A stretch of DNA of 64,000 nt from assembly GCA_010909165.1 (NCBI GenBank), contig MU008164.1, positions 1,550,001 through 1,614,000 on the forward strand. The letters run 5' to 3'. A program made the translations under genes and the position numbers. The notes below the pieces were generated by a model that saw only the letters and a list, made by a program, of their open reading frames with translations, had not been told where the DNA came from and did no database searches. The stretch comes from Anthoceros angustus (Eukaryota > Plantae > Anthocerotophyta). This document shows, piece by piece, positions 19,728 to 63,481 of the stretch. How positions within the stretch are numbered: position 1 is the first letter of the stretch; each line of letters opens with the position of its first letter.

Positions 19728-22700
19728 TTACTGGCGGTCTCCACATGAACAAAACCCATCGACGAAATGGTGAACACGGTGTGCATCTCGCACTATGATC
19801 TCTCGCTTTTCGATCCTGGACATGAGCTTCGTGCCACTGTGGCAGTCATTGCACATTCTGAGATTCTTAGTGACCAGCAAAGTTGTGCCAGCAGGGGTGT
19901 TCAGGAGACCGTGAGCCAAAGCCAATTTCTCCGCATGCCCACACAATCCATCTTCCAGATCTCCATCGGGTGATGCCTTCTGCAGTAACTCCGAGTGTTG
20001 GGTATCGTTTCTCTCGCCTTTTGCCTGCAAATTTACACTCCTTAGCTTTGTAGAAATGTCGTCCCTTTCTTCCCCTACTACGAAAGTGTGGATTTTGCTG
20101 CTTACTTCAATCCAGGCCCTTGCAGGCTTCTTGCAAACACCTGCGGCCCTTCTCAGGCTTTCTAGGTTTTCTACATCCCTCCACCTACCAGCATTTTCGT
20201 AAATGCTTGACAAGAGAGCATACGCAGACGAATTTTGAGGGTCCACTTTCATGATGCGCTCAAAGCATCGTCTGCCACGGTCTATGTCACCATCGCTTCT
20301 GCAGGCAGTCAGCAAAGATGTCCAGCCCACAATGTCGCTTTCATATGGCATCGTTTGCAGCATATTTTCGGCCTCCTCTAGCCGGCCTGATCGCCCAAGA
20401 ACATCAACCACTGACGTGTAATGGTGGACACTGGGTATAATGCCGTGGTTGTCCACCATCATCTTGAAGACTTGCTGTGCCTCATCCACCAGACCTTCAT
20501 GACTACATGCTGCGAGTAAAGAGACAAAAGTGGTGTCGTCAGGCTCGACTCCATGTTGCTGCATCTCTTGGAAACACTTGACTGCCGATTTGCTCATGTT
20601 GTGTTGGCCGTATCCATTCAACAAGGTATTCCATGTCACCACATTTCTCGTGGGCAATCTGTAGAACAGGCTGCGAGCATCATCCAAGCTCCCGCATTTG
20701 AAGTACATGTCCAACAGGCTGGTGCCGACAACCACATCAGCTTCCAGCCCTCTTTCCCGAATTTGGGAATGAAGCTGCTTTCCCTGAAGCAGGGCTCCAA
20801 TACTGGCACAAGCCTTTAATAGCGACACGAATGTAACATTGTTGGCTGGAATGAGACCCTCCTGTTGCATTCTTGCATAGAGGTTGAGGGCCTCATCGCC
20901 AAGTCCTTGGTCAGCATAACCTGAGATCATGGTATTCCATGTCACCACATCTTTTGCAGCTAATCTCTCAAAAAGACGGACGGCGTCTTCTAGGCTCCCG
21001 CATTTTGCATACATGTCCAACAGGCTGTTGCCAACAACCAATTCAGCTTCAAACCCTCTCTCCTTAATTTGGCAATGAAGCCCCTTGCCCTCTTGAAGAG
21101 CTCCTGCAGTTGCACATGCTTTCAGCAGGCACACAAATGTAACGACGTTGGGTACAGCAAGACCCTCCTCTTGCATCCTTGCATAGAGACTGAGAGCTTC
21201 TCGACCGCGCCCATGCTGAGCATATCCTGCAATCATAGCAGTCCACGTCACAACATCTTTGGTGGGCAACTCATCAAATGCTCTGCAAGCATCCTCCAGA
21301 CTCCCACTTTTGGCATACATATCCACCAGGCAGTTGCCCAGAACCAAACTTGCTCTCAGTCCTCTTTCCTGAATTTGTGAATGAAGCTGCTTGCCTTCAT
21401 GCAAAGCTCCCATGCTTGCACATGCTTTCAAAAGACACATGAATGTCACTTCATTCGCAGGAATGAGGCCTTCCTGTTGCATCTTTGCATAAACAGCCAG
21501 AGCTTCTGCACCATGCTCATGCTCGGCATAACCTGCAATCATAGCATTCCATGTCACCACATCCTTCATGGGTAATCTGTCAAAGACACCGCGGGCATGT
21601 TCTAAGCTGCCACATTTAGCATACATGTCTATTAGGCTGTTCCCAATGACCAGATCCATCTCAAGTCCTCGCTCCCGAATGTGGCCATGAAGCTCCCTCC
21701 CTTCATGCAAGGCTCCAACACTGGCACACGCTTTGAGGAGGCATACAAAGGTAACCTGATTGGCTACAATTTCACCTTCCTGTTGCATATTTGCATACAG
21801 AGAGAGAGCATCGTGGCCGAGCCCATGGTGGGCATATCCACCAATCATGGCAGTCCACGTTACCACATTTTTTGAGGGCAACCTGTCAAACACTCTGCGA
21901 GCATCCGCTAAGCTTCCCCATTTGGCATACATGTCGACCAGGCTGCTGCCAACAACTACATCAGCTTCAAGCCCTCTTTCTCGAATGGCAGCATGCAGAG
22001 ACTTCCCCTCAGGTACAGCTCCAGTCATGGCACATGCTTTTAGTAGGCACACATATGTCACGTCATTGGCTGGAGAGGTGCCGTCCTTCTGCATCCTAGC
22101 ATAGATACCAAGAGCTTCTTGAGGCAGCCCATGGTGCACATACCCTGCAATCATGGCATTCCATGTCACTGCATCTTTGGTTGGCAAGCTCTCAAATACT
22201 CTCTGAGCATCCTGTAAGCTCCCACATTTTGCATACATGTCAACTAAGCTGTTACCCACAAATCTATCAGGCTCAATAGCACTCTCCAGAAGGTCAGCAT
22301 GGACCTGCTTCCCAGACGCCAAGTCTGCCACACTTGCACAGGCATTCAGCACAGCCACAAAAACATGATTGTTGGGCTTCACCGTCGACTGCTGCATCAA
22401 TTGGTAAAGTTGCATAGCTTGCACAGGCTGCCGTTGAGCATGTGCAAGGATTATGGAGAACCACATGAACGTGTTCGGCGAACCCATCCTGGTGAACACC
22501 TGCATTGCCTCCTGCAACTTCCCATGACCAGCATACATGCGTATGATGTGGTTGGCCAGAAATTTGTCAGACTCGAACCCAGACTTACAAGCAAGGACAT
22601 GGACACGCCTTCCAACACCCAAATTCTTCTGTTCAATGCAGCTCTTGAGGAGAGAGTATATGAGAGATTGCGGAACCCGATATCCTTGCTGAACCAGTGA

Positions 22701-22847
22701 GTCCAAAGCTTCTACGCGCTCTCTCAGCCTCCCCTCTTCACATAGTTTGGTGCAGATTCCAACCTCTGAAGCCGTATCATAGCTCGCAACCCTGCCAGGC
22801 CGAGGGCACTGTGAAGACGAGAAATCTTCAGGTAACCATCCCAACAT
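19728..22847 (-). CDS. PLS-class PPR protein with E1-E2 and DYW:KP-type deaminase domain (DRQ end); candidate organellar RNA-editing factor
   Basis: Uninterrupted ORF (open from 22952, first ATG 22847) with ~22 P/L/S motifs, KKPARAWIEV (KP box), GHAEKLA, CNDCH, ending CSCGDRQ. True start or an extra 5' exon is uncertain. Confidence 0.93.
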   Translation of the reverse strand: MLGWLPEDFSSSQCPRPGRVASYDTASEVGICTKLCEEGRLRERVEALDSLVQQGYRVPQSLIYSLLKSCIEQKNLGVGRRVHVLACKSGFESDKFLANHIIRMYAGHGKLQEAMQVFTRMGSPNTFMWFSIILAHAQRQPVQAMQLYQLMQQSTVKPNNHVFVAVLNACASVADLASGKQVHADLLESAIEPDRFVGNSLVDMYAKCGSLQDAQRVFESLPTKDAVTWNAMIAGYVHHGLPQEALGIYARMQKDGTSPANDVTYVCLLKACAMTGAVPEGKSLHAAIRERGLEADVVVGSSLVDMYAKWGSLADARRVFDRLPSKNVVTWTAMIGGYAHHGLGHDALSLYANMQQEGEIVANQVTFVCLLKACASVGALHEGRELHGHIRERGLEMDLVIGNSLIDMYAKCGSLEHARGVFDRLPMKDVVTWNAMIAGYAEHEHGAEALAVYAKMQQEGLIPANEVTFMCLLKACASMGALHEGKQLHSQIQERGLRASLVLGNCLVDMYAKSGSLEDACRAFDELPTKDVVTWTAMIAGYAQHGRGREALSLYARMQEEGLAVPNVVTFVCLLKACATAGALQEGKGLHCQIKERGFEAELVVGNSLLDMYAKCGSLEDAVRLFERLAAKDVVTWNTMISGYADQGLGDEALNLYARMQQEGLIPANNVTFVSLLKACASIGALLQGKQLHSQIRERGLEADVVVGTSLLDMYFKCGSLDDARSLFYRLPTRNVVTWNTLLNGYGQHNMSKSAVKCFQEMQQHGVEPDDTTFVSLLAACSHEGLVDEAQQVFKMMVDNHGIIPSVHHYTSVVDVLGRSGRLEEAENMLQTMPYESDIVGWTSLLTACRSDGDIDRGRRCFERIMKVDPQNSSAYALLSSIYENAGRWRDVENLESLRRAAGVCKKPARAWIEVSSKIHTFVVGEERDDISTKLRSVNLQAKGERNDTQHSELLQKASPDGDLEDGLCGHAEKLALAHGLLNTPAGTTLLVTKNLRMCNDCHSGTKLMSRIEKREIIVRDAHRVHHFVDGFCSCGDRQ

Positions 22848-23666
22848 AATAGGTACAAGAATTTTGCATCCTGAGGCAAGCAAGAGAACCGAAAGAAGCT
22901 TGACCTCCCAAGCTCTACACCATCCTCCTCTCCCAGCCTTGCCTCTACACACGCAGGTTGTAACAAGACCTTCCCCCTCGGTGCGCCATTCAAGTTCATC
23001 GGATCACTTTGGTCCCTCTGTACAGCAAACATCAAATCAGCGCCCACTATCCCCAAGCCATCACAGATGGCAACCACTGGGCGGTGACGGAAAACTTACC
23101 TTAGTAGGATACCCCGGAAACCTTTCCTGAAAAGCCTGTGGACCTCCTGGCTCCAGTGCAAAAGTACCCACCCCATACATGAGAATCTACGACCATCTCA
23201 CCCGCAACCCAGCAAAGCTAAGCTGATGAACTACTCACCGGATTTGCGATGCTCTGCTACGCCCCACAGGACGGAGAAAAATCTACACCATTCCTCACAA
23301 GGGCCGTGTTTGCTTCTTTTGATGAGGCTGCAGAAAGGGCCGATGACTCCACCACCCTTCCTCATCTCGTGGGTGCTAACGGATTTACAAACATCTGCCG
23401 CTTCTAGATTCCGGGCAGCCTAGAATGGGCGCCCCAGTTAGAAATCTCATACTGTGTATCAGCGTACATGCTATGCAAAAGGCGGCTCCATTTTTTGTGT
23501 GACGGGACTTAGATTTTGCCGTGCCCATACAGGATATGATGCTCACGAGTCACGAGCAGCTCATGTCACACCTACTTGATTTGGGGAACGGAGCTCGAGC
23601 AGTCACCAACTTGACCGACGCTATTTAGGGCTGCAACAGAGCAGTCGGGGAGGAAAGCTTGCAACG

Positions 23667-43567: not shown

Positions 43568-46411
43568 ATGGCCACAGTATGGCAACCGGACCCGTTACAA
43601 ATTGGTGTGTGTACAGGGATCCTACCAGGAGCTCCCGCTTTCCTCACTGTGGGGAGTGAACCCCTGGCAAACAAAGTCTCCAGGCGCAGCAGTGTGAGGA
43701 GCCTAGCGATGGGTGGGAACGGGTTTTCCTACGATGATGGTCGCCAGAGGCAGGAGCACTTGTGGCAACAAGTTTTTCCGGACCCTACCATGTGGTGGGA
43801 CAGCAGACGAGGAAAGAGGAGCTCCCGTTCGCCTGACTTCCGGCGTAAGGAGTCCGGCGAGGTGTTGTGTGTAGACAACATGTTTAAGCCAGCTTGGGTT
43901 GATGACCAGCTCATTTCCTTGGATGTGCAGATGGGTCATGGTGCCTCTCCTTCCAAGTGGAGATCTCCGGATAAGGCTGAACCTGACAGGCGTGAAGGAT
44001 GGGGAATGGACGTCGTAACGGCTGGAACCGTGAGCACGTTATGTCAGCAGGGGAAGCTTTCTGAGGCCGTTGGAGCCCTGGAATCTCTGGCGCAGACAGA
44101 CTCTGCTATTTCTCAGTCTCTGTTTTACACCGTGCTGAAATTGTGTACAGCTAAGAAGGATTTGGTTGTGGGGCGACGAGTTCACGATCTCACTGTTAAA
44201 CTTGGGTACGATTCAAATGCATTCTTGGGGAACCATATCTTGCGCATGTATGCATGTGGAGGTAGGCTAGAAGAGGCCATGGATGTGTTCACCAAGGTGG
44301 GCAAACCAAATGCCTTCATTTGGGTTTCCATAATCTCTGCACATGCTAAGCATGGGAGACCTAATGAGGCCATACAACTGTACCATGAGATGCGTAGGTC
44401 AGGACTGGAGGTGGATGCTCATGTGTTTGTAGCTGCCCTTCAAGCTTGTGCATTTGCTGCCGACTTGGAATCTGGCAGAAAAGTGCACTGTGATGTTGCA
44501 CAGTGGCATTCTAACTTGTTTGTTGGCACTGCCTGGTGGACATGTATGCAAAATGTGGAACTGAAAGATGCACGCCAGGTTTTTGACAGCATGGCCACAA
44601 AGGATGTGGTGACATGGAATGCCCTGATTGCTGGGTATGCACAGGGTTCAGCCAAGACGCGCTTGTTCTGTATGGACAAATGGAGCAGGAGGGCTGATTT
44701 TGGCTGACCATGTTTTTGCTTGCCTTCTGAAGGCCTGTGCACTGGTGCCTTACAGAAGGGCAGGCAGCTGCACTCACAGATTGGAAAGAGGACTGCTGGA
44801 TGACATGTTGGGCAACTGCCTGGTGGACATGTATGCAAAATGTGGTGAACTGAAGATGCACGCCAGGTTTTTGACAGCTTGGCCAAAGGATGTGGTGACA
44901 TGGAATGCCCTGATTGCTGGGTATGCACAGCAAGGACTCGCCAAGAGGCACTTGTTGTATACGGACAAATGGAGCAGGAGGGCCTGATTTTGGCTAACCA
45001 TATTACTTTTGCTTGCCTTCTGAAGGCCTGTGCAAGCACTGGTGCCTTACAGAAGGGCAGGCAGCTGCACTCATTGTTGAAAGAGGACTGCTGGATGACG
45101 TAGTGGGGCACCTGCCTGGTGGACATGTATGCAAAATGTGGTGAACTGGAAGATGCACGCCAGGTTTTTGACAGCTTGGCCACAAAGGATGTGGTGACAT
45201 GGACGGCACTGATTGCTGGGTACGCACAGCAAGGACTTGGCCATGAGGCGCTTGTGCTGTATGGACAAATGGAGGAGGAGGGCCTCATTTTGGCTGACGA
45301 TGTTACATTTGCTTGCCTTCTAAACGCCTGTGCAAGCACTGGTGCTTTACAAAAGGGCAGGCAGCTGCACTCGCAGATTGTCAAAAGAGGACTGCTGGAT
45401 CACGTAGTGGTGGGCACCTGCCTGGTGGACATGTATGCAAAATGTGGAGAACTTGAAGATGCACGCCGGGTCTTTGACAGCTTGGCCACAAAGAATCTGG
45501 TGACATGGAATGCCCTGATATCTGGGTATGGTACTTGTGATGATGGTCACAGAGCACTAGCTTGTTTTGAGGAGATGTTAGTTGCCGGTATTCAACCCAA
45601 TTGTGTTACTTTTACTTGCATTCTAGTAGCGTGCAGTCATGCGGGACTGGTTCAGGAGGGTCGCAAGCACTTTGATTCCATGGCTGAACAACATGCCGTC
45701 AAACCCACTATTGAGCATTACGTTTGCATGATTGATCTTCTTGGGCGTGCAGGCCATTTAGATGAGGCAGAGAAGATGCTATTATCATGTGAGGGCCAAA
45801 GTAATGTTGTGGGCTTGACATCTTTCTTAAATGCCTGCAAAAGTCACGGGGATTTAGAGAGGGCGACGTGGTGTTTTGAAAGGATTGTTAGGCTGGACCC
45901 TCAGGGGGCATCAGCGTATGTGCTCATGGCCAATGCCTATGCAGATGCAGGTAGGTGGATCGATGTAGACAGGATTGAAACACTGAGAATGTTAGCAGGA
46001 GCTAACAAGAAGCCTGCAGTGGCGACCATTGAGGTGAATAAGCAGGTACACAGATTTCTGGTGGGAGAAAGGAGAGAGGATATTGCTCTTAAGGTAGAGA
46101 GCACGAATGCACGTATGAAGCAGGAAGGAGGCCACGTGCCTCAAACAAAGCTGGTATTGAAGCCAGTCTGTGAGAAGGAAAAGGAAGATGCGCTTTGTGG
46201 GCATGCTGAGAAGCTAGCTCTGGCGTTTGGTCTCTTGCACACTCCAAGTGGGACACCTCTAGTAGTAACGAAGAATCTGCGCATGTGCAGTGACTGCCAC
46301 AGTTCCACCGAGATCATGTCAAGGCTTGAACACAGAGTCATTGTTGTAAGGGATGGGTACCGTGTGCATCGATTCGCAGCTGGTTGTTGCAGTTGTAAGG
46401 GTCGACCCTAA
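43568..46411 (+). CDS. PDF-motif + PLS-PPR + E + DYW:KP(GRP) protein, copy A (frameshifts at ~44.5-45.1 kb)
   Basis: QEHLWQQVFPDPTMWWDSRRGKRSSRSPDFRRKESGEVL then PLS repeats, KKPAVATIEV, GHAEKLA, CSDCH, CSCKGRP. Indels in the middle may be sequencing errors. Confidence 0.8.
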
Positions 46412-46719
46412 GGCTGAGAATAATGAACTATCTAGCCAGTGCGATCTTGCTGGGTTACGGAGTCGGAATGACACCCGGAATGACCAGGGAGGAACATGTC
46501 CTTAGAAACAAACGGGAATCCTTTTTTCTTTTCTTTTGTAAAATTTTGGGTCACTCTAAATGTTGAAAACAGAAAAAATGGCACCATTCCTGTTGTCATC
46601 GAACAACTGTGTTTCCAGACTGTGGTCTGTCGGACAACAATGAGTATCCTTTTTTCACTTGTCAGCAATCCGCTGGGTACATAATCCTGAGGAAATTTCT
46701 TTTGCCTCACATGTTTCCA

Positions 46720-48243
46720 AGTGGAGGTAGGCTAGAGGCCATGGATGTGTTCACCAGATGGGCAAACCAGATGCCTTCATGTGGTCTTCCATAATCTCAC
46801 ATGCTAAGCATGGGAAACCTAATGAGGCCATACAACTGTACCATGAGATGCGTAGGTCAGGAGTGAGGCGGATGCTCACGTCTTTGTAGCTGCCCTTCAA
46901 GCTTGTGCTGCCGACTTGGAATCTGGCAGAAAAGTGCACTGTGATGTGTTGCAGAGTGGCATTCCTACTAACTTGTTTGTTGGCACCTGCCTGGTGGACA
47001 TGTATGCAAAATGTGGCAGAACTGAAAGATGCACGCCAGGTTTTTGACAGCATGGCCACAAAATGTGGTGACATGGAATGCCCTGATTGCTGGGTATGCA
47101 CAGCAAGGACTTCCAAGAGGCGCTTGTGTATGGACAAATGGAGGAGGGCCTCATTTTGGCTGACGATGTTACTTTGCTTGCCTTCTAAGGCCTGTGCAAG
47201 CACTGGTGCCTTACAGAAGGGCAGGCAGCTGCACTCAGATTGTCAAGAGGACTGCTGGATAACGTAGTGGTGGGCACCTGGTGGACATGTATGCAAAATG
47301 GGCAAGATGCACGCCAGGTTTTTGACAGCATGGCCACAAAGGATGTGGTGACATGGAATGCCCTGATATCTGGGTATGGTACTTGTGATGATGGTCACAG
47401 GCACTAGCTTGTTTTGAGGAGATGTTAGTTGCCGGTATTCAGCCTAATGATGCTACTTTTACTTGCCTTCTAGTAGCATGCAGTCATGCGGGACTGGTTC
47501 AGGAGGGTCGCAAGCACTTTGATTCCATGGCTGAACAACATGCCGTCAAACCCACTATTGAGCATTACGTTTGCATGATTGATCTTCTTGGGCGTGCAGG
47601 CCATTTAGATGAGGCTGAGAACTTGCTCTTATCATGTGAGGGCCAAAGTAATGTTGTGGGCTTGACATCTTTCTTAAATGCCTGCAAAAGTCACGGGGAT
47701 TTAGAGAGGGCGACGTGGTGTTTTGAAAGGATTGTTAGGCTGGACCCTCAGGGGCATCTGCGTATGTGCTCATGGCCAATGCCTGCAGATGCAGGTAGGT
47801 GGACCGATGTAGACAGGATTGAAACACAGAATGGTAGGAGCTAACAAGAAACCTGCAGTGGCGACCATTGAGGTGAATAAGCAGGTACATAGATTCTGGT
47901 GGGAGAAAGAGAGGATATTGCGCTTAAGGTAGAGAGCACGAATGCACGTCTGAAGCAGGAAGGAGGCCACGTACCTCACACAAAGTTGGTGTTGAAGCCA
48001 CTGTCTGAGAAGGAAAAGGAAGATGCGCTTTGCGGGCATGCCGAGAAGTTAGCTCTGGCTTTTGGTCTCTTGAACACTCCGAGTGGGACACCTCTGGTGG
48101 TAACGAAGAATCTACGCATGTGCAGTGACTGCCACAGTTCCACGGAGATCATGTCAAGGCTTGAACAGAGAGACATTGTTGTAAGGGATGGGTACCGTGT
48201 GCATCGATTCGCAGCTGGTTGTTGCAGTTGTGGTCGACCGTGA
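46720..48243 (+). pseudogene. PPR-DYW:KP(GRP) copy B, 5'-truncated and frameshifted
   Basis: Begins inside the first S motif; ends CSCGRP. Confidence 0.75.
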
Positions 48244-48649
48244 GAATGAACTATCTAGCCAGTGCGATCTTGCTGGGTTACGGAGTCGGAATGACACCCG
48301 GAATGACCAGGGAGGAACATGTCCTTAGAAACAAACGGGAATTTTTCTTTTGTAAAAGGTCACCTAAATGTTGAAAACAGATGGCTCCATTCTGTGTCAT
48401 CGAACAACTGTGTTTCCAAGACTGTGTCTCTCGGATGAATCGGAATCCTGCTCTTGGGATCGTTGGCTTGGAACCGCTGGGTGAGCATGAGATCCTGCTT
48501 CAAACTGTGGAACCAGTTCTACGATGTTTGCCAGTGGTGCAGCCGTGATCCGCCTCACGCACAATTTCAGCGTGTATGTGACCGGCTCAATTTGGCGCTG
48601 ACGATAGTTGAGCTCATTCGCTCCCTGGCAGCTCCGGGGGAACGTCTAC

Positions 48650-49818
48650 AACAACCTGCAAGGCTCACCTGTGCCGTCAGCAGTGTGAGCCCAGCACTTC
48701 CGAGAAATGTGTGGTGGGGGACGGGTTTCGATGGTCGTCGCCAGGAGCAGGAGCACTTGTGGCAACAATTTTTCTGGACCCTACCATGTGGTGGGACAAC
48801 AGACGAGATAAAAGAGCTCCCGTTCGCCTGACTTCCGGCGTAAGGGGTCCGGCGAGGTCTGTGGTTAAACAGCATGTTAAGCCAGCTTGGGTTGATGAGC
48901 AGCTCGTCTTGGATCTGGAGATGGCGTGCAGGATCGGAAATGGGCGTTAACGGCTGGAACCGTGAGCATGTTATGTCAGCAGGGAAGCTTTCTGAGGCCG
49001 TTGGAGCCCTGGAATCTCTGGCGCAGACAGACTCTGCTATTTCAGTCTCTGTTTTGCTGTGCTGAAACTGTGTACAGCTAAGAAGGATTTGGTTGTGGGG
49101 CGACGAGTTCATGATCTCACTGTCAAACTTGGGTACGAGTCGAGTGCATACTTGGGGAACCATATCTTGCGCATGTATGCATGTGGAGGTAGGCTAGAGG
49201 AGGCAGAGAAGATGCTATCATGTGAGGGCCAAAGTAATGTTGTGGGCTTGACATCTTTGTTGAATGCCTGCAAAAGTCACGGGGATAGAGAGAGGGCGTG
49301 GTGTTTTGAAAGCATTGTTAGGCTGGACCCTCAGGCATCGCGCATGTGCTCATGGCCAATGCCTATGCAGATGCAGGTAGGTGGACCGATGTAGACAGGA
49401 TTGAAACACAGAGGGGCAGGAGCTAACAAGAAACCTGCAGTGGCGACCATTGAGGTGAATAAGCAGGTACATAGATTTCTGGGAGAGAAAGGAGAGAGGA
49501 TATTGTTTAAGGTAGAGAGCACGAATGCACGTCTGAAGCAGGAAGGAGGCCACCTCAAACAGTTGGTGTTGAAGCCACTGTGTGAAGGAAAAGGAAGATG
49601 CGCTTTGTGGGCATGCTGAGAAGCTAGCTCGTTTTGGTCTCTTGAACACTCCGAGTGGGACACCTCTGGTGGTAACGAAGAATCTACGCATGTGCAGTGA
49701 CTGCCACAGTTCCACGGAGATCATGTCAAGGCTTGAACACAGAGACATTGTTGTAAGGGATGGGTACCGTGTGCATCGATTCGCAGCTGGTTGTTGCAGT
49801 TGTAAGGGTCGACCGTGA
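48650..49818 (+). pseudogene. Copy C: PDF motif + first PPRs fused directly to S2/E/DYW:KP (internal deletion)
   Basis: YACGGRLEEA/EKMLSCEGQSN junction at ~49200; ends CKGRP; many indels. Confidence 0.7.
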
Positions 49819-50196
49819 GAATGAACATCTAGCCAGTGATCTTGCTAAGTTACGGAGTGGAATGACAGAAATGACAGAGGAACATGTCCTTAGAAACAAC
49901 GGGAATCTTTTCTTTCTTTTGTAAAATTTTGGTCACTCTAATGTTGAAAACAGAAAAATGGCACCATTCTGTCATCGAACAACTGTGTCCAAGACTGGTC
50001 TGTCGGACAATTGAAGAGTATCCTGCTCAGATCGTTGCTTCCACAAGTGAGCATGAGGGTCCCAGAAACTTCGAAGCTGTGGAACCAGTTCTGCTCAATG
50101 GCTGCGAGTGGCAGCAGCCGATCCACCTGCACAATTTCAGCGCAAGGCTGCCCACCGCCAGCAATTTATGCTGACTTGGGAATAGGTTGAGCTCAT

Positions 50197-52448
50197 TTGG
50201 GCCCTGGCATCTTCAGGCAACGTCACGCCCTGCAGGACACCTGCCTGCTCACGCCTCTGTGCAGCAGTGTAGCCCAGCACTTCCACTTCCGGAGAAATGT
50301 GTGTGGGGACGGGCGATGGTCGTGCCAGGAGCAGGAGCACTTGTGGCAACAATTTTTTTTGGACCCTTCCATGTGGTGGGACAACAGACGAGATAAGAAA
50401 AGCTCCCGTTCGCCTGACTTCCGCCATAGGGGGTCCGGCGAGGTGCTGTGGTTAAACAGCTTGTCTAAGCCAGCTTGGGTTGATGAGCAGCTCGTCTCCT
50501 TGGATCTGGAGATGGGTGCAGGATCGGAAATGGGCGTTGCAACGGCTGGAACCGTGAGCATGTTATGTCAGCAGGGGAAGCTTTCTGAGGCCGTTGGAGC
50601 TCTTGAAACTCTGGCGCAGGCAGACTGTGCTATTTCTCAGTCCCTGTTTTACAGTGTACTGAAACTGTGTACAGCTAAGAAGGATTTGGTTATGGGGCGA
50701 CGAGTTCATGATCTCACTGCCAAGCTTCGGTACGAGTGGAGTGCATTCTTGGGGAACCATATCTTGCGCATGTATGCATGTGGAGGTAGCCTAGAGGAGG
50801 CCATGGATGTGTTCACCAGGGTGGCAAACCAGATGTCTTCATGTGGTTTTCCATAATCTCTGCACATGCTAAGCATGGGAAACCTAATGAGGCCATACAA
50901 CTGTACCATGAGATGCGTAGGTCAGGAGTGAAGGCGGATGCTCACGTCTTTGTAGCTGCCTTCAAGCTTGTGCATTTGCTGCCGACTTGGAATCTGGCAG
51001 AAAAGTGCATTGCGATGTGGTGCGGAGTGGCATTCCTACTAACTTGTTTGTTGGCAACTGCCTGGTGGACATGTATGCCAAATGTGGCGAACTGAAAGAT
51101 GCACGCCAGGTTTTTGACAGCTTGACCACAAAGGATGTGGTGACATGGACATCACTGATTGCTGGGTATGCACAATGTGGTGAACTGAAAGAAGCACGCC
51201 GGATTTTTGACAGCTTGAACACAAAGAATGTGGTGACATGGACTGCCCTGATAGCTGGGTATGCCCAGCAAGGGCTCGGGCAAGAGGCGCTTGTTCTGTA
51301 TGGACAAATGGAGGAGGAGGGCCTCATTTTGGCGGACGACGTCACATTTGCTTGCCTTCTAAACGCCTGTGCAAGTACTGGTGCTCTACAGAAGGGCAGG
51401 CAGCTGCACTCAAAGATAGTTGAAAGAGGACAGCTGGATCACATAGGGGTGGGCAACTCCCTGGTGGACATGTATGCAAAATGTGGTCAACTGGAAGATG
51501 CACGCCGGGTTTTTGACAGCATGAGCACAAAAGATGTGGTGACATGGAATGCGCTGATATCTGGGTATGGTACTTGTGATGAAGGTCAAAGGCACTAGCT
51601 TGTTTTGAGGAGATGTTAGTTGCTGTATTCAGCCTGATGGTGCTACTTTCACTTGCCTTCTAGCAGCATGCAGTCATGAGGGACTGGTTCACGAGGGTCG
51701 CAAGCACTTTGATTCCATGGCTGAGCAACATGGCCTCAAACCTACAATTGAGCATTACAATTGCATGATTGATCTTCTTGGGCGTGCAGGCCATTTAGAT
51801 GAGGCTGAGAACATGCTCTTATCATGCGAGACCCAAAATAATGTTGTGGGCTTGACGTCTTTGTTGAATGCCTGCAAAAGTCACGGGGATTTAGAGAGGG
51901 CGATGTGGTGTTTTGAAAGCATTATTAGGCTGGACCCTCAGTGGGCGTCTGCGTACGTGCTCATGGCCAATGCCTACGCAGATGCAGGTAGGTGGACCGA
52001 TGTAGACAGGATTGAAACACAGAGAATGGTAGCGGGAGCTAACAAGAAACCTGCAGTGGCAACCATTGAGGTGAACAAGCAGGTACATCGATTTCTGGTG
52101 GGAGAAAGGAGAGAGGATATAGCTCTTAAGGTAGAGAGCACGAATTCACGTGTGAAGCAGGAAGGAGGGCACGTGCCTCACAGAAAGTTGGTGTTGAAGC
52201 CAGTGTGTGAGAAGGAAAAGGAAGATGCGCTTTGTGGGCATGCTGAGAAGCTAGCTCTGGCGTTTGGTCTCTTGAACACTCCGAGTGGGACACCTCTGGT
52301 GGTAACTAAGAATCTGCGCATGTGCAGTGACTGCCACAGTTCGACGGAAATCATGTCAAGGCTTGAACAGAGAGACATTGTTGTAAGGGATGGATACCGT
52401 GTGCATCGATTCGCAGCTGGTTGTTGCAGTTGTAAGGGTCGTCCTTGA
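50197..52448 (+). CDS. PDF-motif + PLS-PPR + E + DYW:KP(GRP) protein, copy D (few frameshifts)
   Basis: QEHLWQQFFLDPSMWWDNRRDKKSSRSPDFRHRGSGEVLWL..PAWVDEQL, PLS repeats, KKPAVA, HAEKLA, CKGRP. Start codon uncertain. Confidence 0.78.
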
Positions 52449-53378
52449 CACTAATGAAGAAATAGCCAGTGCGATCTGCTTGGGTCACGGAGTCGAGTCG
52501 ACCATATGAGGCTGGTGTGATGGGGCAGCTGCGAGAACTACTATGAGATAGTATTGATAACACCGTGGATAATACGGAGAGTTTTACACTAAAAAAAACA
52601 TATACTATGAGGTAAAATGGCTTGTGATTGTGAGCTTTTATTCACTCGTGGATGCCTTGCTCATGCTTGAAGGCACTTTGTATTTCTTCGCTCATCTTCG
52701 AAGAGGTAGAGCATGTTTCGGTCAGGCCAGGAAGTTATGTTTAACATTCCAACTTAGCACCCAGTCCTTAGGTTTGATAGTCTTCTTGTATTGCTTATTG
52801 CTAGTTGCTTGTAATAGACCTCTTAGTTCCATATTATTGGACTGCTTGCAGACAGTTTCTAGGCTTGAGAGGTTTGAGAGGATCTTATCTCTAATGTGTG
52901 GTGGTGAGATAGATGTAAATGCGTTAAATGCCGTTGTAAATTCCCTAATCATGGTGTGTTTGCTGTTTGCTCTTGTGTGAATAGGAATGATATTTGGATA
53001 TAACCCCAATCAAAGTCTTAGGGATCTACGAATCCACGTAGTGTGAGCTGCTCTCCTATCAACAGCAAAACGGAGCAAGTTCTGATCCAGGCATATGCCC
53101 ACAAGTCCTCATTTCATTTGCGCCTTGAGTTAGAATGCTCTCTGTAATTTCTTTCCCATTCACACTCTTGGGCGAGCCTTTCAGCACGTCTTTGCAGACG
53201 CTGGCGATGTCTGAACCTACAGCAGCGCGCGGCAGGCAGGGAAGGATGTGCCGACTGTTGTAGAGGAAGTTTTGGTGACCTTGGGTCAGTTGTGGGGGCT
53301 TATTATCGTCTGCTGAAAATGTTGGGTGTCCCCAGCTGGTGTCTGCTGACCCCCCATTTTTCGACAGCAACATCCTCC

Positions 53379-53620
53379 CATGTCTACATGTCCCACTCGG
53401 GGTGTTCAAGAGGGACATGTAGACATGTTGAAAAGCTTGGGGTCATGGGAAAACTTGAAAAGCTTGGGCAACCAAGTCCCAAAGATGTTTGCCAAGTGCT
53501 GAGCTGCGGCGGGTTCAAGAGGGACATGTAGACATGTTGAAAAGCTTGGGGTCATGGGAAAACTTGAAAAGCTTGGGCAACCAAGTCCCAAATATGTTTG
53601 CCAAGTGCTGAGCTGCGGCG
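53379..53620. repeat. 16-bp perfect inverted repeat followed by a 2 x 109-bp tandem repeat
   Basis: catgtctacatgtccc / gggacatgtagacatg (53379-53427); unit starts at 53404 and 53513. Confidence 0.88.
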
Positions 53621-53697
53621 GCTGTGATCCGGCGCTATGCGGCCCACCAGCAACGGGCTCGTCTTGGGCAGTAGGTTGAGCTCATCGCTGCCTGGCC

Positions 53698-54460
53698 ATG
53701 GCTTCGGCAGCGACGCCTATCCTCCTGCTACGCCTTGCGCCTGCTGACTGCTCATCCTCTGCCTCTGCTGCCGTCCGGAGCAGTGTTAGGAGCCCAGCAC
53801 TTCCCTTCGAGAAAATGTGTGGTGGTGACGGGTTTCCCAGCCAGGATCCGGAGCAGGAGCACTTGTGGCAACAATTTTTCTGGACCCTACCATGTGGTGG
53901 GACAACAGACGAGATAAGACGAGCTCTTATTCGCCTGACTTCCGTGTAAGGGGTCCGGCGAGATGCTGTGGTTAAACAACATGTCTAAGCCAGCTTGGGT
54001 TGATGCGCAGCTCGTCTCCTTGGATATGCGGATGGGTGCGGATCGGAAATGGGCGTCGTAACGGCTGGAATGGTCAGAATGTCATTTCATTAAGGGAAGC
54101 TTTGAGGCCGTTGGAGCCCAGGAATCTTTGGCGCAGACAGACTCAATCTCTGTTTTACAGTGTGCTAAAACTGTGTACAGCTAAGAAGGATTTGGTTGTG
54201 GGGCGAGTTCATTATCTCACTGCCAAACTTGGGTATGAGTCCATTGCATACTTGGGGAACCATATCTTGCGCATGTATGCATGTGGAGGTAGCCTAGAGG
54301 AGGCAATGGACGTGTTCACCAGGGTGGGCAAACCAAATGTCTTCGTGTGGTTTTCCATAATCTCTGCACATGCTAAGGGAGACCTAAGGAGGCCATACAA
54401 CTGTACCATGAGGCGCAGGTCAGGAGTGAAGCCGAATGCTCTCTTTGTAGCTTTCCTTCA
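53698..54460 (+). pseudogene. Copy E: transit peptide + PDF + first PPRs, truncated
   Basis: Same sequence as copy F, cut at the 54457 junction. Confidence 0.75.
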
Positions 54461-55509
54461 CTCGTGGATGCCTTGCTCATGCTTGAAGGCACTTTGTATT
54501 TCTTCGCTCATCTTCGAAGAGGTAGAGCATGTTTCAGTCAGGCCAGGAAGTTATGTTTAACATTCCAACTTAGCACCCAGTCCTTAGGTTTGATAGTCTT
54601 CTTGTATTGCTTATTGCTAGTTGCTTGTAATAGACCTCTTAGTTCCATATTATTGGACTGCTTGCAGACAGTTTCTAGGCTTGAGAGGTTTGAGAGGATC
54701 TTATCTCTAATGTGTGGTGGTGAGATAGATGTAAATGCGTTAAATGCCGTTGTAAATTCCCTAATCATGGTGTGTTTGCTGTTTGCTCTTGTGTGAATAG
54801 GAATGATATTTGGATATAACCCCAATCAAAGTCTTAGGGATCTACGAATCCACGTAGTGTGAGCTGCTCTCCTATCAACAGCAAAACGGAGCAAGTTCTG
54901 ATCCAGGCATATGCCCACAAGTCCTCATTTCATTTGCGCCTTGAGTTAGAATGCTCTCTGTAATTTCTTTCCCATTCACACTCTTGGGCGAGCCTTTCAG
55001 CACGTCTTTGCAGACGCTGGCGATGTCTGAACCTACGCGCAGCGCGGCGGCAGGCAGGGAAGGATGTGCCGACTGTTGTAGAGGAAGTTTTGGTGACCTT
55101 GGGTCAGTTGTGGGGGCTTATTATCGTCTGCTGAAAATGTTGGGTGTCCCCAGCTGGTGTCTGCTGACCCCCCATTTTTCGACAGCAACATCCTCCCATG
55201 TCTACATGTCCCACTCGGGGTGTTCAAGAGGGACATGTAGACATGTTAACTTGGGTCATGGGAAAACTTGAAAGCTTGGGCAACCAAGTCCCAAAGATGT
55301 TTTAAGTGCTGAGCTGCAGGTTCAAGAGGACATGTAGACATGTTGAAAAGCTTGGGGTCATGGGAAAACTTGAAAGCTTGGGCAACCAAGTCCCAAATAT
55401 GTTTGCCAAGTGCTGAGCTGCGGCGGCTGTGATCCGGCGCTATGCGGCCCACCGGCTAGCAATTTGGCGCTCGTCTTGGGCAGTAGGTTGAGCTCATCGC
55501 TGCCTGGCC

Positions 55510-56835
55510 ATGGCTTCGGCAGCGCGACGCCTATCCTCCCTGCTACGCCTTGCGCCTGCTGACTGCTCATCCTCTGCCTCTGCTGCCGTCCGGAGCAGTG
55601 TTAGGAGCCCAGCACTTCCCCTTCCGAGAAAATGTGTGGGTGGTGACGGGTTTCCCAGCCAGGATCCGGAGCAGGAGCACTTGTGGCAACAATTTTTTCT
55701 GGACCCTACCATGTGGTGGGACAACAGACGAGATAAGACGAGCTCTTATTCGCCTGACTTCCGGTGTAAGGGGTCCGGCGAGATGCTGTGGTTAAACAAC
55801 ATGTCTAAGCCAGCTTGGGTTGATGCGCAGCTCGTCTCCTTGGATATGCGGATGGGTGCGGGATCGGAAATGGGCGTCGTAACGGCTGGAATGGTCAGAA
55901 TGTCATTTCATTAAGGGAAGCTTTCGGAGGCCGTTGGAGCCCAGGAATCTTTGGCGCAGACAGACTCAATCTCTGTTTTACAGTGTGCTAAAACTGTGTA
56001 CAGCTAAGAAGGATTTGGTTGTGGGGCGCCGAGTTCATTATCTCACTGCCAAACTTGGGTATGAGTCCATTGCATACTTGGGGAACCATATCTTGCGCAT
56101 GTATGCATGTGGAGGTAGCCTAGAGGAGGCAATGGACGTGTTCACCAGGGTGGGCAAACCAAATGTCTTCGTGTGGTTTTCCATAATCTCTGCACATGCT
56201 AAGCACGGGAGACCTAAGGAGGCCATACAACTGTACCATGAGGCGCAGGTCAGGAGTGAAGCCGAATGCTCACGTCTTTGTAGCTTTCCTTCAGGCTTGT
56301 GCATTTGCCACCGACTTGGAATCTGGCAGAAAAGTGCATTGCGATGTGGTGGAGAGTGGCATTCCTACTAACTTGTTTGTTGGCAACTGTCTGGTGGACA
56401 TGTATGCCAAATGTGGCGAACTGAAAGATGCACGCCAGGTTTTTGACGGCATAGCCACAAAGGATGTGGTAACATGGACGGTGCGGATTGCTGGGTATGC
56501 TAAATGCGGTGAATTGAAAGATGCACGCCAGGACTTTGACAGCCTGAACACAAAGAATGTGGTGACATGGACTGCCCTGATAGCTGGGTATGCCCAGCAA
56601 GGGCTCGGCAAGAGGCGCTTGTCCTGTATGAACGAATGGAGCTAGAGGGCTGATTCTGGCTAACCGTATTACTTTTGCGTGCCTTCTGAAGGCCTCTGCA
56701 AGCACTGGTTCCTTACAGAAGGGCAGGCAGCTTCACTCTGATTGTGGGAAGAGGAGTGCTGGAGGATGTAATGTTGGGAAACTCCTGGTGGACATGTATG
56801 GAAAATGTGGTGCACTGGAAGATGCACGCCAGGCT
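55510..56835 (+). pseudogene. Copy F: transit peptide + PDF motif ORF (134 aa, stop 55912-55914), then interrupted PPR repeats; no DYW
   Basis: MASAARRLSSLLRLA... then QEHLWQQFFLDPTMWWDNRRDKTSSYSPDFRCKGSGEMLWL; TAA replaces the CAG seen in copies A and D. Confidence 0.75.
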
Positions 56836-58290
56836 TGAGCTTGTAGCTGTGGCAGGGAGTGCCTGAGGTCTTGATGGTGGGGGCACAGCCTGATTCACTG
56901 TCCTCCAATAGTTTGCAGCTGCAATATTCGGGGTCACGTCAGTGGGGCCAGCCGTGGGTGGCTGGTGACAGCATTTGCTCGTATCGAGGCTGCAATGCCT
57001 CGTTGACTTTGGTCCGCAGTTGCTGTCGCCCAATGGTGCCTCTTCCCGGAAGCTCATTTCCAGCTCAATGTTGGGCCCCATGGGCAAAGCGTTTGTGGGT
57101 ACACTGGCTAATGTTGATGCTTGGAGCATCTCTCTACTGTGGTCTGCTGTTTTGATTCGCGGCAGCTGCGAGAACTACTATGAGATAGTATTGATAACAC
57201 CGTGGATAATACGGAGAGTTTTACACTAAAAAACATATACTATGAGGTAAAATGGCTTGTGATTGTGAGCTTTTATTCACTCGTGGATGCCTTGCTCATG
57301 CTTGAAGGCACTTTGTATTTCTTCGCTCATCTTCGAAGAGGTAGAGCATGTTTCGGCCAGGAAAGTGTTTAACATTCCAACTTAGCACCCAGTCCTTAGG
57401 TTTGATAGTCTTCTTGTATTGCTTATTGCTAGTTGCTTGTAATAGACCTCTTAGTTCCATATTATTGGACTGCTTGCAGACAGTTTCTAGGCTTGAGAGG
57501 TTTGAGAGGATCTTATCTCTAATGTGTGGTGGAGATAGATGTAAATGCGTTAAATGCCGTTGTAAATTCCTAATCATGGTGTGTTTTGCTGTTTGCTCTT
57601 GTGTGAATAGGAATGATATTTGGATATAACCCCAATCAAAGTCTTAGGGATCTACGAATCCACGTAGTGTGAGCTGCCTCCTATCAACAGCAAAACGGAG
57701 CAAGTTCTGATCCAGGCATATGCCCACAAGTCCTCATTTCATTTGCGCCTTGAGTTAGAATGCTCTGTAATTTCTTTCCCATTCACACTCTTGGGCGAGC
57801 CTTTCAGCACGTCTTTGCAGACGCTGGCGATGTCTGAACCTACGCGCGCGCGGCGGCAGGGGGAAGGATGTGCCGACTGTTGTAGAGGAAGACCTTGGTG
57901 ACCTTGTGGGGCTTATTATCGTCTGCTGTTGGGTGTCCCCAGCTGGTGTCTGCTGACCCCCATTTTCGACAGCAACATCCTCCCATGTCTACATGTCCCA
58001 CTGGGGTGTTCAAGAGGACATGTAGACTTGGGGTCATGGGAAAACTTGAAAGCTTGGGCAACCAAGTCCCAAAGATGTTTGCCAAGTGCTGAGCGGCGGG
58101 TTCAAGAGGACATGTAGACATGTTGAAAAGCTTGGGGTCATGGGAAAACTTGAAAAGCTTGGGCAACCAAGTCCCAAATATGTTTGCCAAGTGCTGAGCT
58201 GCGGCGGCTGTGATCCGGCGCTATGCGGCCCACCGGCTAGCAATTTGGCGCTCGTCTTGGGCAGTAGGTTGAGCTCATCGCTGCCTGGCC

Positions 58291-59595
58291 ATGGCTTCGG
58301 CAGCGCGACGCCTATCCTCCCTGCTACGCCTTGCGCCTGCTGACTGCTCATCCTCTGCCTCTGCTGTCCGGAGCAGTGTTAGGAGCCCAGCACTTCCCTT
58401 CCGAGAAAATGTGTGGTGACGGGCCCAGCCAGGATCCGGAGCAGGAGCACTTGTGGCAACAATTTTTCTGGACCCTACCATGTGGTGGGACAACAGACGA
58501 GATAAGACGAGCTCTTATTCGCCTGACTTCCGGTGTAAGGGTCCGGCGAGATGCTGTGGTTAAACAACATGTCTAAGCCAGCTTGATGATGCAGCTCGTC
58601 TCCTTGGATATGCGGATGGGTGCGGATCGGAAATGGGCGTCGTAACGGCTGGAATGGTCAGAATGTCATTTCATTAAGGGAAGCTGGAGGCCGTTGGAGC
58701 CCAGGAATCTTTGGCGCAGACAGACTCAATCTCTGTTTTACAGTGTGCTAAAACTGTGTACAGCTAAGAAGGATTTGGTTGTGGGGCGCCGAGTTCATTA
58801 TCTCACTGCCAAACTTGGGTATGAGTCCATTGCATACTTGGGGAACCATATCTTGCGCATGTATGCATGTGGAGGTAGCCTAGAGGAGGCAATGGACGTG
58901 TTCACCAGGGTGGGCAAACCAAATGTCTTCGTGTGGTTTTCCATAATCTCTGCACATGCTAAGCACGGAGACCTAAGGAGGCCATACAACTGTACCATGA
59001 GGCGCAGGTCAGGAGTGAAGCCGAATGCTCACGTCTTTGTAGCTTTCTTCAGGCTTGCATTTGCCACCGACTTGGAATCTGGCAGAAAAGTGCATTGCGA
59101 TGTGGTGGAGAGTGGCATTCCTACTAACTTGTTTGTTGGCAACTGTCTGGTGGACATGTATGCCAAATGTGGCGAACTGAAAGATGCACGCCAGGTTTTT
59201 GACGGCATAGCCACAAAGGATGTGGTAACATGGACGGTGCGGATTGCTGGGTATGCTAAATGCGGTGAATTGAAAGATGCACGCCAGGACTTTGACAGCC
59301 TGAACACAAAGAATGTGGTGACATGGACTGCCCTGATAGCTGGGTATGCCCAGCAAGGGCTCGGGCAAGAGGCGCTTGTCCTGTATGAACGAATGGAGCT
59401 AGAGGGCTGATTCTGGCTAACCGTATTACTTTTGCGTGCCTTCTGAAGGCCTCTGCAAGCACTGGTTCCTTACAGAAGGGCAGGCAGCTTCACTCACAGA
59501 TTGTGGGAAGAGGAGTGCTGGAGGATGTAATGTTGGGAAACTCCCTGGTGGACATGTATGGAAAATGTGGTGCACTGGAAGATGCACGCCAGGCT
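58291..59595 (+). pseudogene. Copy G: as copy F, no DYW domain
   Basis: Near-identical to 55510-56835, with the same TAA. Confidence 0.75.
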
Positions 59596-60699
59596 TGAGC
59601 TTGTAGCTGTGGCAGGGAGTGCCCGAGGTCTTGATGGTGGGGGCACAGCCTGATTCACTGTCCTCCAATAGTTTGCAGCTGCAATATTCGGGGTCACGTC
59701 AGTGGGGCCAGCCGTGGGTGGCTGGTGACAGCATTTGCTCGTATCGAGGCTGCAATGCCTCGTTGACTTTGGTCCGCAAGTTGCTGTCGCCCAATGGTGC
59801 CTCTTCCCCGGAAGCTCATTTCCAGCTCAATGTTGGGCCCCATGGGCAAAGCGTTTGTGGGTACACTGGCTAATGTTGATGCTTGGAGCATCTCTCTACT
59901 GTGGTCTGCTGTTTTGATTCGCGGCAGCTGGTTCTGAGCATTCTTTCTGGAACGCAGTTGATCACCTGAGAAAAGACGTGGAGGATGATTTCTCTTTGGT
60001 GGCCGGCCCTCTGATTACAGTGGCAGCTCTTACATTTAGCCTGCTCAAGCCAGGTCTAACTCAGCCTTGCTTAGGCTAAGTGAACTATGGCAGGTGTCAG
60101 GGCCAGGTCTAACATCCAGCCTTGCTCAGGCCAAGTGAACTGTGAACGTTCGGTTTGCACCGATGGTTTGTGACACGTATCAAGGACAAGTAACAAGAGT
60201 CACGCACGATCACTTCGTGAAGAAATGGTGCAAACGGGATTCCATCCTCGGCAGCGATCTCCCAGAGGACCATGCCCATTGCAGTAAGCCATGGATGGTT
60301 TATGGAGGACCTTTGGGGCCCTTCTCTTCTTCCAGTTAACAGGAATAAAGACGTAAAGACAGTGTAGTCCAGGAGTTGCAGTTCTCATACAACCGTTGGT
60401 GGGAAGCTGAGGGGGACTTTGTACAGCGTACTCCAGCTGCGATGTATATTTTTCAAGAACACACACGGATTGCGTACATCTGAAAACGAAATTGTTCTCC
60501 ACAATCACGAAACCATCCAGACACTGCTACTACTGGGATAAATGTTTCTTTTTCCAAGAGAGGCTACGCTTCAGCAGAGTTGCCGCCAAGCATAAAATAT
60601 CGACCTGGTTACACGACCTGGTCAAACACCCTCAGGATTTGTCAACCAATTTTGGCATGGGGAACCTGGTTAACTTAGATGTGCTGGATTGCTGATGCA

Positions 60700-61738: not shown

Positions 61739-61918
61739 TGGCACATCACGCACTCCAACTGCTATTCTGACAACAGCTTGTGAGCTAACTTGAAGGTTGT
61801 GTTTCTTTCTGCGGTCTGCATTCCCCTCGGCTGCTTAGCGTCTTGGTCTTCGGTGTGGTTTGGAGCTGGTAGCCTCGTGAGTGCGGCAAAGCTGGCGGGA
61901 CTTTTTGGAGGCAGAGGC

Positions 61919-63481
61919 ATGGGCGGGGGGTTTATGGATGATATGCCTTATTACACTTACAAGCCTTCGAGGCGGTACCCCCCGGGCTCGCCCTGGGGAT
62001 CCAGGAATGTTGTGCGAAGTCCTTACTTCCCCGAGCCGGAGGCGACCGATACTGCCGAGCCCTACTACAATGGAGGTGTGAATGGATACCATCGGGTACC
62101 TGCTGTTGCGGAGAGGCATGGCAGGGGTCAGAAGCCGCCCGTGGAGACTGCAAGGGTGCCAGTGCGGAAGATAGTTGTAACGGACGGGAAGGATGCCCGG
62201 AAGGAGACCCCGAAGGAGACCCGGAAGGAGACTTCACGTGTGAGTGAGGAAGCCAAGAAGCCTCCGAAGAAGTGGTTTGATAATGCGGATGAAGCGGCGA
62301 GGTATGTGCAATGCAGGTATCGAGGATATGTGGTGCGGAAGACGCAGCCGTTGAAGCATCTGCGGATTATCAAGGAGGTTGGGGAGAAGTTAAAGCATTT
62401 TCAGACGCAAGCGTGTGACCCGGAGTATCTGGAAAAGCTCCGAGAGAACAACATGGAGCGACTGAAGTTCAACGAGATGATTATGCATCAGCTGCTGAAG
62501 TTGGACAGTCTTCAAGGAGTGCATCCGGTGGTGCGGGATATGCGGAAGGCAGTTACTCGGGAGTTGGTCAGGCTGCAGGATGTCACCGAGGCCGCCCTTG
62601 CTTCCGGCAGGACACCTACTGCTGGTGATCTGAAATTCGTCGAAACTCCAATTAACAGTGCGGATGAAGATGATGCTGCACAAAGTTGTGAAACGGAAGA
62701 TGAGATGGCCGTGCAAGAAAACAACGTGGAAGAGGACAGTCTGCCCTTGACTGCGGAGGACGAGGAGGCGGCAGCTGCTGCAGTTGAGAAGATGGAGATT
62801 GATGATGAGAAGGGAGGGTTGACAGACCTCACTACCCCTGAGTCCCACGCTCCTGCAGACATTGTTGAAGAACAGCCCATGTTGGAAGTTGCCACTCCGG
62901 CTCTCGCTGGTGAAAGATCTGATGCTCTTGCCAATGACGAAGCGGAGAATAGGGCAGGTGCTTTCTCGCATGACGAGAATGAGGAGGATCGGACGTCAGA
63001 TCGAGGGCAACCAGCCAGCGGCCACGAGTTTCTAGGTACTGATGTTGATGCTGAAATGGAGTTGCCTGGTGTGCATAACAGTAGTGCAGAGACTGTCTCC
63101 ACATCCGCAGAGGGGGATGAGGTCCTTGTAGATGCGGAGACGACAGAAGCTTGCACGCTGAGTACGAACCCGAGCTCTGAAGATGTAGAGCCTGATGGTA
63201 GGAAGACAACTCGGGGAGAGTGTGATAGGAAAAGAAAGTTAGAAGATTCTGATGAAGGAGAGGGCAGCACCATTGATATACTTCGGCAGTTGAAGAGGGA
63301 GAACGAGCAGCTGAAGCAGATGTTTGAGCAAATGATGCATCAGCAAGCCACCTCCATCTGCCACTTGAGTGAGAGGTTAGAAAGGCTAGAGGATCATGTC
63401 CGGAGAGGCAAGAAAAAGCCTGCCAGTGGTCGAAAAGTAAATAGCATCCGAAAGTCAAGGACACAGATGGATGAGGACTGA
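61919..63481 (+). CDS. IQ-motif + BAG-domain co-chaperone (BAG5/6/7-like) with acidic tail and C-terminal coiled coil
   Basis: DEAARYVQCRYRGYVVRK (IQ) and LLKLDSLQGVHPVVRDMRKAVTRELVRLQD (BAG). First ATG 61919, downstream of the TATA box. Confidence 0.9.
   Translation: MGGGFMDDMPYYTYKPSRRYPPGSPWGSRNVVRSPYFPEPEATDTAEPYYNGGVNGYHRVPAVAERHGRGQKPPVETARVPVRKIVVTDGKDARKETPKETRKETSRVSEEAKKPPKKWFDNADEAARYVQCRYRGYVVRKTQPLKHLRIIKEVGEKLKHFQTQACDPEYLEKLRENNMERLKFNEMIMHQLLKLDSLQGVHPVVRDMRKAVTRELVRLQDVTEAALASGRTPTAGDLKFVETPINSADEDDAAQSCETEDEMAVQENNVEEDSLPLTAEDEEAAAAAVEKMEIDDEKGGLTDLTTPESHAPADIVEEQPMLEVATPALAGERSDALANDEAENRAGAFSHDENEEDRTSDRGQPASGHEFLGTDVDAEMELPGVHNSSAETVSTSAEGDEVLVDAETTEACTLSTNPSSEDVEPDGRKTTRGECDRKRKLEDSDEGEGSTIDILRQLKRENEQLKQMFEQMMHQQATSICHLSERLERLEDHVRRGKKKPASGRKVNSIRKSRTQMDED

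Follow-up and report, generated by a model that had tools for sequence, protein, structure and literature searches.

An OSB-type PDF domain in front of GRP-type DYW:KP pentatricopeptide repeat proteins in the hornwort Anthoceros angustus and its relatives in other non-seed plants

A cluster of seven PPR genes with an N-terminal PDF module

We analyzed a 64-kb stretch of genomic DNA from the hornwort Anthoceros angustus (assembly GCA_010909165.1, contig MU008164.1, positions 1,550,001 to 1,614,000; hereafter, the window, with coordinates counted from its first nucleotide), in which seven tandem paralogs of PLS-class pentatricopeptide repeat (PPR) genes, denoted C1 to C7, occupy the region between 43.5 and 59.6 kb on the plus strand, according to the open reading frames (ORFs) and a tblastn map. 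Six of the seven copies contain, upstream of the PPR array, a module homologous to the PDF motif of the plant organellar single-stranded DNA-binding (OSB) proteins. A regular expression applied to the six-frame translation and a hidden Markov model (HMM), which was built from 70 PDF modules and scanned over the whole 64 kb, detect six PDF-like modules and no others in the window; all of them lie on the plus strand and within the PPR cluster, at the positions listed in the initial annotation of this DNA (around 43751, 48748, 50332, 53853, 55672 and 58442). The count of six modules among seven copies in that annotation is correct as well, the remaining copy, C2, being one that starts inside the PPR array and lacks the 5' part. 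As assembled, three of the six modules, those of C1, C4 and C6, are in frame (HMM E-values from 4e-25 to 2e-29), and those of C3, C5 and C7 are frameshifted. The recurrence of the module in six tandem paralogs counts as one observation rather than six, and a chance origin is ruled out by the match to outside proteins.

Copy C1 (43568..46408, plus strand) consists of a presequence, the PDF module, a broken PLS-PPR array, an E region and a DYW:KP domain with the GRP end. The module of C1 (43742..43936; 13 of the 14 conserved positions, with a W to C replacement in the LWL motif) is contained in a single 379-codon ORF (43568-44704) that starts with ATG and about 60 presequence residues and runs through the module into the first PPR motifs, as identified by the PPR matches in Pfam. 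Because these parts are contiguous in one ORF, no intron is needed to join the module to the PPRs in the window, and the initially proposed location of the module upstream of the PLS array holds. The 3' piece of C1 (45104-46408) matches PPR, E_motif and DYW_deaminase (PF14432; E-value 3.8e-32). The most complete copy is C4 (50098..52448, plus strand), with an in-frame module (50323..50517) that retains all 14 conserved positions and a 3' piece (51609-52445) that matches DYW_deaminase (E-value 1.9e-32) and E_motif.

The remaining copies, all on the plus strand, are incomplete to a greater extent. C2 (46711..48240) is truncated at the 5' end, with the loss of the PDF module, and retains the E-DYW:KP part, as judged by the tblastn map and the open segments; C3 (48646..49815) combines a frameshifted module (approximately 48739-48927) with a deletion of most of the PPR array and a retained DYW:KP end. 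C5 (53680..54395), C6 (55510..56835) and C7 (58290..59592) are fragments: C5 contains only a frameshifted module (approximately 53845-54037) and the first PPR motifs; C6 has a transit-peptide-like start and an in-frame module (55663-55857) with all 14 conserved positions and lacks the E and DYW parts; and C7 has a frameshifted module (approximately 58433-58621) and shares its lesions with C5 and C6.

In the usual description of a PPR editing factor, the presequence is followed by the PLS array, the E motifs and the DYW domain. The broken copies in the window were searched against Pfam piece by piece, as separate open segments, and the resulting matches to PPR, PPR_1, PPR_2 and PPR_3 as well as E_motif (E-values of 1.4e-13 and 2.4e-12) are those of PLS-class PPR proteins, with PF14432 identifying a DYW-type deaminase. 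In the translations, the PG box is replaced by KKPAVATIEV, the deaminase site reads HAEKLALAF (HAE, with alanine in the HxE site), and a CSDCH motif and a CSCKGRP end follow. The GRP subgroup is defined by HAE, the C-terminal GRP and a KP-type box that replaces the PG box, and this class has been linked to U-to-C editing (PMC9478123). The copies of the cluster that retain the 3' part can thus be assigned, by their motifs, to the hornwort GRP subgroup of the DYW:KP PLS-PPRs and are predicted to belong to the U-to-C class. They share the PLS, E1-E2 and DYW_deaminase regions as well as KPAxA, HAE and GRP with the hornwort GRP DYW:KP proteins described previously (Gerke 2020 and Gutmann 2020, as cited in PMC9478123), but the accessible published descriptions of the latter mention no N-terminal PDF. 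U-to-C activity has been shown for the designer proteins KP2 and KP3 (PMC9478123).

The window encompasses another PLS-PPR gene, on the minus strand (19728..22952), with an intact ORF of 1074 amino acids, a KP-type box (KPARA) and a GDRQ end, which appears close to the DRH subgroup. The PDF HMM detects no module in this gene, which therefore serves as an internal control: KP genes without the PDF module exist.

The module belongs to the PDF family of OSB repeats

An exhaustive phmmer search among 1.84 billion representative sequences, with the 65-residue module of C4 as the query, yielded 684 matches at E<=1e-3 and 224 matches at E<=1e-10. Most of the matching proteins carry the module 1 to 13 times, in the C-terminal half, and the named ones are OSB1 or OSB3 proteins of Populus, Euphorbia, Vigna and Bidens; the OSB-type matches that were scanned against Pfam, including Populus OSB1, have a weak match to SSB in front of the PDF repeats. 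Populus OSB1 is matched with an E-value of 3.4e-27 over the whole protein in phmmer, and in BLASTP two of its repeats are 51% (E-value 9e-22) and 47% (E-value 1e-16) identical to the module. In the alignment of 70 sequences, R22, K25, D32 and F33 are invariant, and 10 further positions are conserved in at least 90% of the sequences; the Pro-Asp-Phe signature and the flanking WWDNR and LWL blocks are all found in the window modules, with the 13 or 14 of 14 conserved columns given above. The interpretation of the module as an OSB-type PDF motif, which the initial annotation had offered, is thereby borne out, with a significant match once it is aligned to OSB proteins, and the module is best considered a genuine PDF domain that shares ancestry with the C-terminal repeats of plant OSB proteins. 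The probability that the resemblance is fortuitous is negligible: Pfam has no model for the module among the window pieces scanned, and word-index searches in which the C1 module or the Selaginella N-terminus served as query return nothing beyond the query itself, but the hundreds of significant matches, the named OSB proteins among them and the same set of conserved columns rule this explanation out.

The comparison with the OSB proteins (2006, summarised in PMC6963530 and PMC4166229) shows the same motif of about 50-60 residues, 45-51% identical, with the conserved W, F, P, D, R and K residues kept, and both groups of proteins are organelle-targeted. However, in OSB proteins 1-3 or more PDF repeats lie on the C-terminal side of an SSB-like OB fold, whereas the genes of the cluster encode a single N-terminal PDF in front of a PPR array and no OB fold: none of the window pieces has an SSB match in Pfam. 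The window proteins, as deduced from these domain matches, are not OSB proteins and have only the motif in common with them. PDF repeats were also detected by phmmer in a Coptis gene model annotated as a kinesin (P0040) and a Striga model annotated as an 'interactor of constitutive active ROPs' (P0034), both of which are most likely models merged with a neighbouring OSB gene.

Predicted fold of the module and its linker

The structure of the module alone is predicted with high confidence by AlphaFold2 from the 70-sequence alignment (pLDDT 91.7), with the order of elements helix, short strands, helix. The PDB contains no sequence match to the module; a Foldseek search of the PDB with the model yields no match at E<=0.001, and an exhaustive structural search with VIA-align, with a best Z of 3.7, found no solved structural relative. 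A double-stranded RNA-binding domain-like alpha-beta-beta-beta-alpha fold was considered and gains no support from these fold searches. In a model of the N-terminal 186 amino acids, comprising the module and the first PPR helices, each of the two parts is predicted with confidence, and the linker block has a pLDDT of 62 (pTM 0.61); between lineages, the length of this linker varies from about 10 to 35 residues. Given the low confidence and variable length of the linker, the model suggests that the module is an independently folding small alpha-beta domain on a short, variable, flexible tether to the PPR helix stack.

PDF-PPR fusions across non-seed plants

Proteins in which an N-terminal module is followed by PPR repeats were identified in the lycophytes Selaginella moellendorffii (XP_024517303.1, P0121) and Diphasiastrum complanatum (KAJ7231026.1), the ferns Adiantum capillus-veneris (KAI5076972.1, P0122, and KAI5061374.1), Adiantum nelumboides, Ceratopteris richardii (P0174) and Pteridium (a transcript), the moss Sphagnum compactum (P0175), and several Logan and EukProt proteins. 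The order of the parts is the same as in the window, namely, a presequence (in some of the proteins), PDF, a short linker and the PLS array, and two fern transcripts (P0136 and P0169) carry both the PDF and the PPR parts. In contrast to the copies of the cluster that retain the 3' part, no DYW domain was found in these Selaginella, Diphasiastrum, Adiantum, Ceratopteris, Pteridium, Sphagnum and Logan/EukProt proteins, which end after the E motifs (P0121, P0122, P0174 and P0175), and some PPR proteins carry two or three PDFs (P0005, P0050 and P0169). In Selaginella, the next gene starts 26 bp past the stop codon of the PDF-PPR gene, so that no DYW domain is hidden downstream. The PDF motif is thus present on a PPR protein of S. 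moellendorffii even though OSB is listed as not detected in this species (PMC4166229). Altogether, PDF-PPR proteins were recovered from moss, lycophytes, ferns and hornwort-type data, whereas the seed-plant matches that were looked up are OSB proteins or odd chimeric gene models.

Two Logan contigs extend the range of C-terminal regions. In contig L001, a PDF ORF is followed, after a possible 88-nt GT-AG intron or one frameshift, by a 657-aa PPR-E-DYW part with a KP-like box; in contig L004, a PDF ORF and a likely short intron (GTAATT...CAG, approximately 57 nt) precede a 956-aa PLS-E-DYW part with the canonical PG box KKPGQSWIE. The gene structures differ as well: there is no intron in the window copies, the apparent short intron of L001 and L004 lies between the module and the PPR part, and the only intron of the Selaginella gene (L003, GL377648.1, 3001-5803) is inside the module, right after WWDNRRNK.

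In a tree of 222 modules (65 columns), the window modules and those of Adiantum, Pteridium and the Logan proteins P0005, P0081 and P0146 form one clade (SH-aLRT 97); the two lycophyte modules fall outside any supported grouping. The PPR-linked modules, which form a clade of their own, have their own signature, KP[AS]WVD as opposed to PPWV[KN]. The tree is weak evidence for a single old fusion. Given that the module occurs with E-only, DYW:PG and DYW:KP ends and that some KP genes lack it, the fusion, apparently an old feature of non-seed-plant PLS-PPRs, is not tied to U-to-C chemistry. The PDF-PPR-DYW:KP architecture in the initial annotation therefore stands in part: GRP-type KP copies do carry the module, but the DYW-less relatives, the PG box of L004 and the KP gene without PDF show that it is not a KP speciality.

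Decay of the cluster and assembly noise

Compared with C4, C6 and C7, the array of C1 has deletions of 2, 4, 1 and 2 bp and a larger gap. The module of C3 contains four 1-bp deletions and one 3-bp deletion, that of C5 two 1-bp deletions, and that of C7 two 1-bp deletions and one 4-bp deletion; immediately behind the module, C5, C6 and C7 share both an 11-bp deletion and a TAA in frame, and all three end before the E and DYW parts. C4 has an in-frame stop (50188-50190) between its only upstream ATG and the module as well as four 1-bp deletions (around 50823, 50959, 51588 and 51624), at least three of which are in short runs. The frame changes of the window copies are single-base shifts within conserved codons and are therefore not attributable to introns.

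The three tandem repeat units that carry C5 to C7 (52524..59930, plus strand; about 1.9-2.7 kb each, 95-97% alike) differ by 6-13 substitutions and 26-43 indel events, a 4-7-fold excess of the latter, which are mostly 1-3 bp long; about 75% of the 1-bp events are in homopolymers, and one and the same T-run has been shortened in three copies, C3, C5 and C7, but not in C6. Natural decay yields far more substitutions than indels, and the indel excess is accordingly read as probable consensus noise in a near-identical repeat that was beyond polishing, so that base-level frame calls in 52524-59930 are likely to be unreliable. Carried to the extreme, this pattern, together with the location of most of the C4 deletions in short runs, would imply that all frame breaks are assembly errors and that the cluster holds working genes. 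We consider this highly improbable: the TAA and the 11-bp deletion are shared by C5 to C7, which lack the E and DYW parts; C2 lacks the 5' half, C3 lacks the array, and the 2- and 4-bp deletions of C1 lie outside homopolymers; and the alignment of C1 with C4 over the 819-nt E-DYW part contains no indel, so that the noise is not everywhere.

Short-read contigs bear on the same question. Contigs of four runs, for which the library type is not on record, were aligned to C4 (2,601 letters) at a likeness of at least 90%, and the alignment is covered by thousands of paralog contigs of 120-280 nt; in all four runs, the conserved stretch of the family extends from the module to the stop codon. At the C4 sites 50958, 51588 and 51624, longer and shorter forms are both present among the contigs of the four runs; most paralog contigs have the extra base at 50958, but the presence of forms without the extra base at all three sites again speaks against errors as the sole cause. 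The shared or multi-base lesions of C1, C2, C3 and C5 to C7 are real, and none of the seven copies is intact as assembled. C4 may have become a pseudogene recently, or it may be a functional gene with sequence errors; some of its five lesions, the stop and the four deletions, may stem from the assembly, in which case C4 would be less damaged than it appears. The cluster as a whole is mostly a graveyard. One 201-nt contig of run X7, which we guess to be RNA, is identical to the C4 stop codon and 3' flank (52412-52600), a segment without cover in the two runs guessed to be DNA; the 3' end of C4 may be transcribed, and X7 may derive from the source species itself.

Between the PPR fragments, an open segment of about 400 bp, the translation of which is hydrophobic and rich in cysteine, recurs as part of the tandem unit (52573-52977, 54377-54793 and 57345-57626); it may be a gene or belong to a mobile element. 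Downstream of the cluster, a 565-codon ORF on the plus strand (61784-63478) encodes a BAG domain (PF02179, E-value 2.3e-8) and an acidic C-terminal half and looks like an ordinary neighbour gene.

Possible functions of the PDF domain

When a PPR array binds RNA, its N-terminus faces the 5' end. The PDF domain would therefore be placed on single-stranded sequence immediately upstream of the footprint of the PPR array, where it could act as a sequence-independent single-strand clamp that raises the affinity or keeps the target unfolded. Such predicted sequence-independent single-strand binding is, tentatively, the most likely role of the module, given that the PDF motif of OSB1 has been reported to be sufficient for binding single-stranded DNA (review, PMC6963530). 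The broader proposition, that the PDF is a functional, ancient single-strand-binding helper of the PLS editing factors of non-seed plants, is possible but rather doubtful; what argues for a function is the deep conservation of the module across plant lineages.

Several observations weigh against this proposal. OSB1 and OSB2 prefer single-stranded DNA to RNA (review, PMC4166229), so that binding to RNA cannot be taken for granted. Designer GRP-type proteins without PDF edit U to C in E. coli, albeit weakly, at 22-26% (PMC9478123), and the module is hence not needed for catalysis. Finally, no constraint on the module is visible within the cluster, where its dN/dS among C1, C4 and C6 is 0.6-1.2, a noisy estimate from 65 codons, compared with 0.20 for the 819-nt E-DYW part of C1 and C4.

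The DNA preference of OSB1 and OSB2, the sufficiency of the OSB1 motif and the retention of all conserved OSB-motif positions would fit a nucleoid tether, as proposed in the initial annotation, with the PDF bound to organellar single-stranded DNA, such as that of transcription bubbles, R-loops or replication intermediates, and with editing occurring co-transcriptionally. We regard this as unlikely because the PPR-linked modules, with the distinct clade and signature described above, may have shifted in specificity, and because the domain is placed at the position expected for RNA on the 5' side of the PPR footprint. Somewhat less likely still is a protein-protein or oligomerisation module that brings in partner proteins or lets PPR proteins associate among themselves or with OSB-like proteins. 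The occurrence of 1 to more than 10 tandem PDF repeats in OSB proteins, the tetramer formed by AtOSB2 and the PPR proteins with two or three PDFs are compatible with this possibility, but the invariant R, K, D and F residues together with four tryptophans look more like a nucleic-acid-binding face.

Taken together, these findings are probably best explained by a genuine PDF domain on GRP-type KP PPR proteins that stems from an old fusion in non-seed plants, is predicted to act as a single-strand helper, and is encoded in a mostly decayed cluster.

Relation to previous work and implications

Full-text literature searches revealed no paper in which PPR proteins are connected with the PDF motif; Gerke 2020, Gutmann 2020 and Zaegel 2006 were outside the scope of these searches, and a prior mention is possible. 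In a term search of a 2026 kingdom-wide survey of editing-factor domain fusions (PMC13386178), neither OSB nor 'single-stranded' occurs. The idea common to the PDF-PPR proteins and to MORF, ORRM/RRM-PPR and OZ (PMC13386178) is an extra nucleic-acid-binding or helper domain on, or beside, a PPR editing factor.

For the Anthoceros angustus genome, the indel-rich tandem repeats imply that pseudogene calls in recent PPR arrays need read-level checks. The module is also a candidate affinity-raising add-on in the engineering of the weakly editing designer GRP-type PPR proteins (PMC9478123). More generally, the PDF motif would be a mobile module rather than a feature of OSB proteins only. If the proposed function is correct, the PDF raises the RNA affinity of these editing factors or couples editing to single strands in the nucleoid, and perhaps takes on part of the role that MORF proteins have in seed plants. 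A conserved, OSB-derived front domain on a subset of PPR proteins in mosses, hornwort-type plants, lycophytes and ferns would thus be an additional component of the non-seed-plant editosome.

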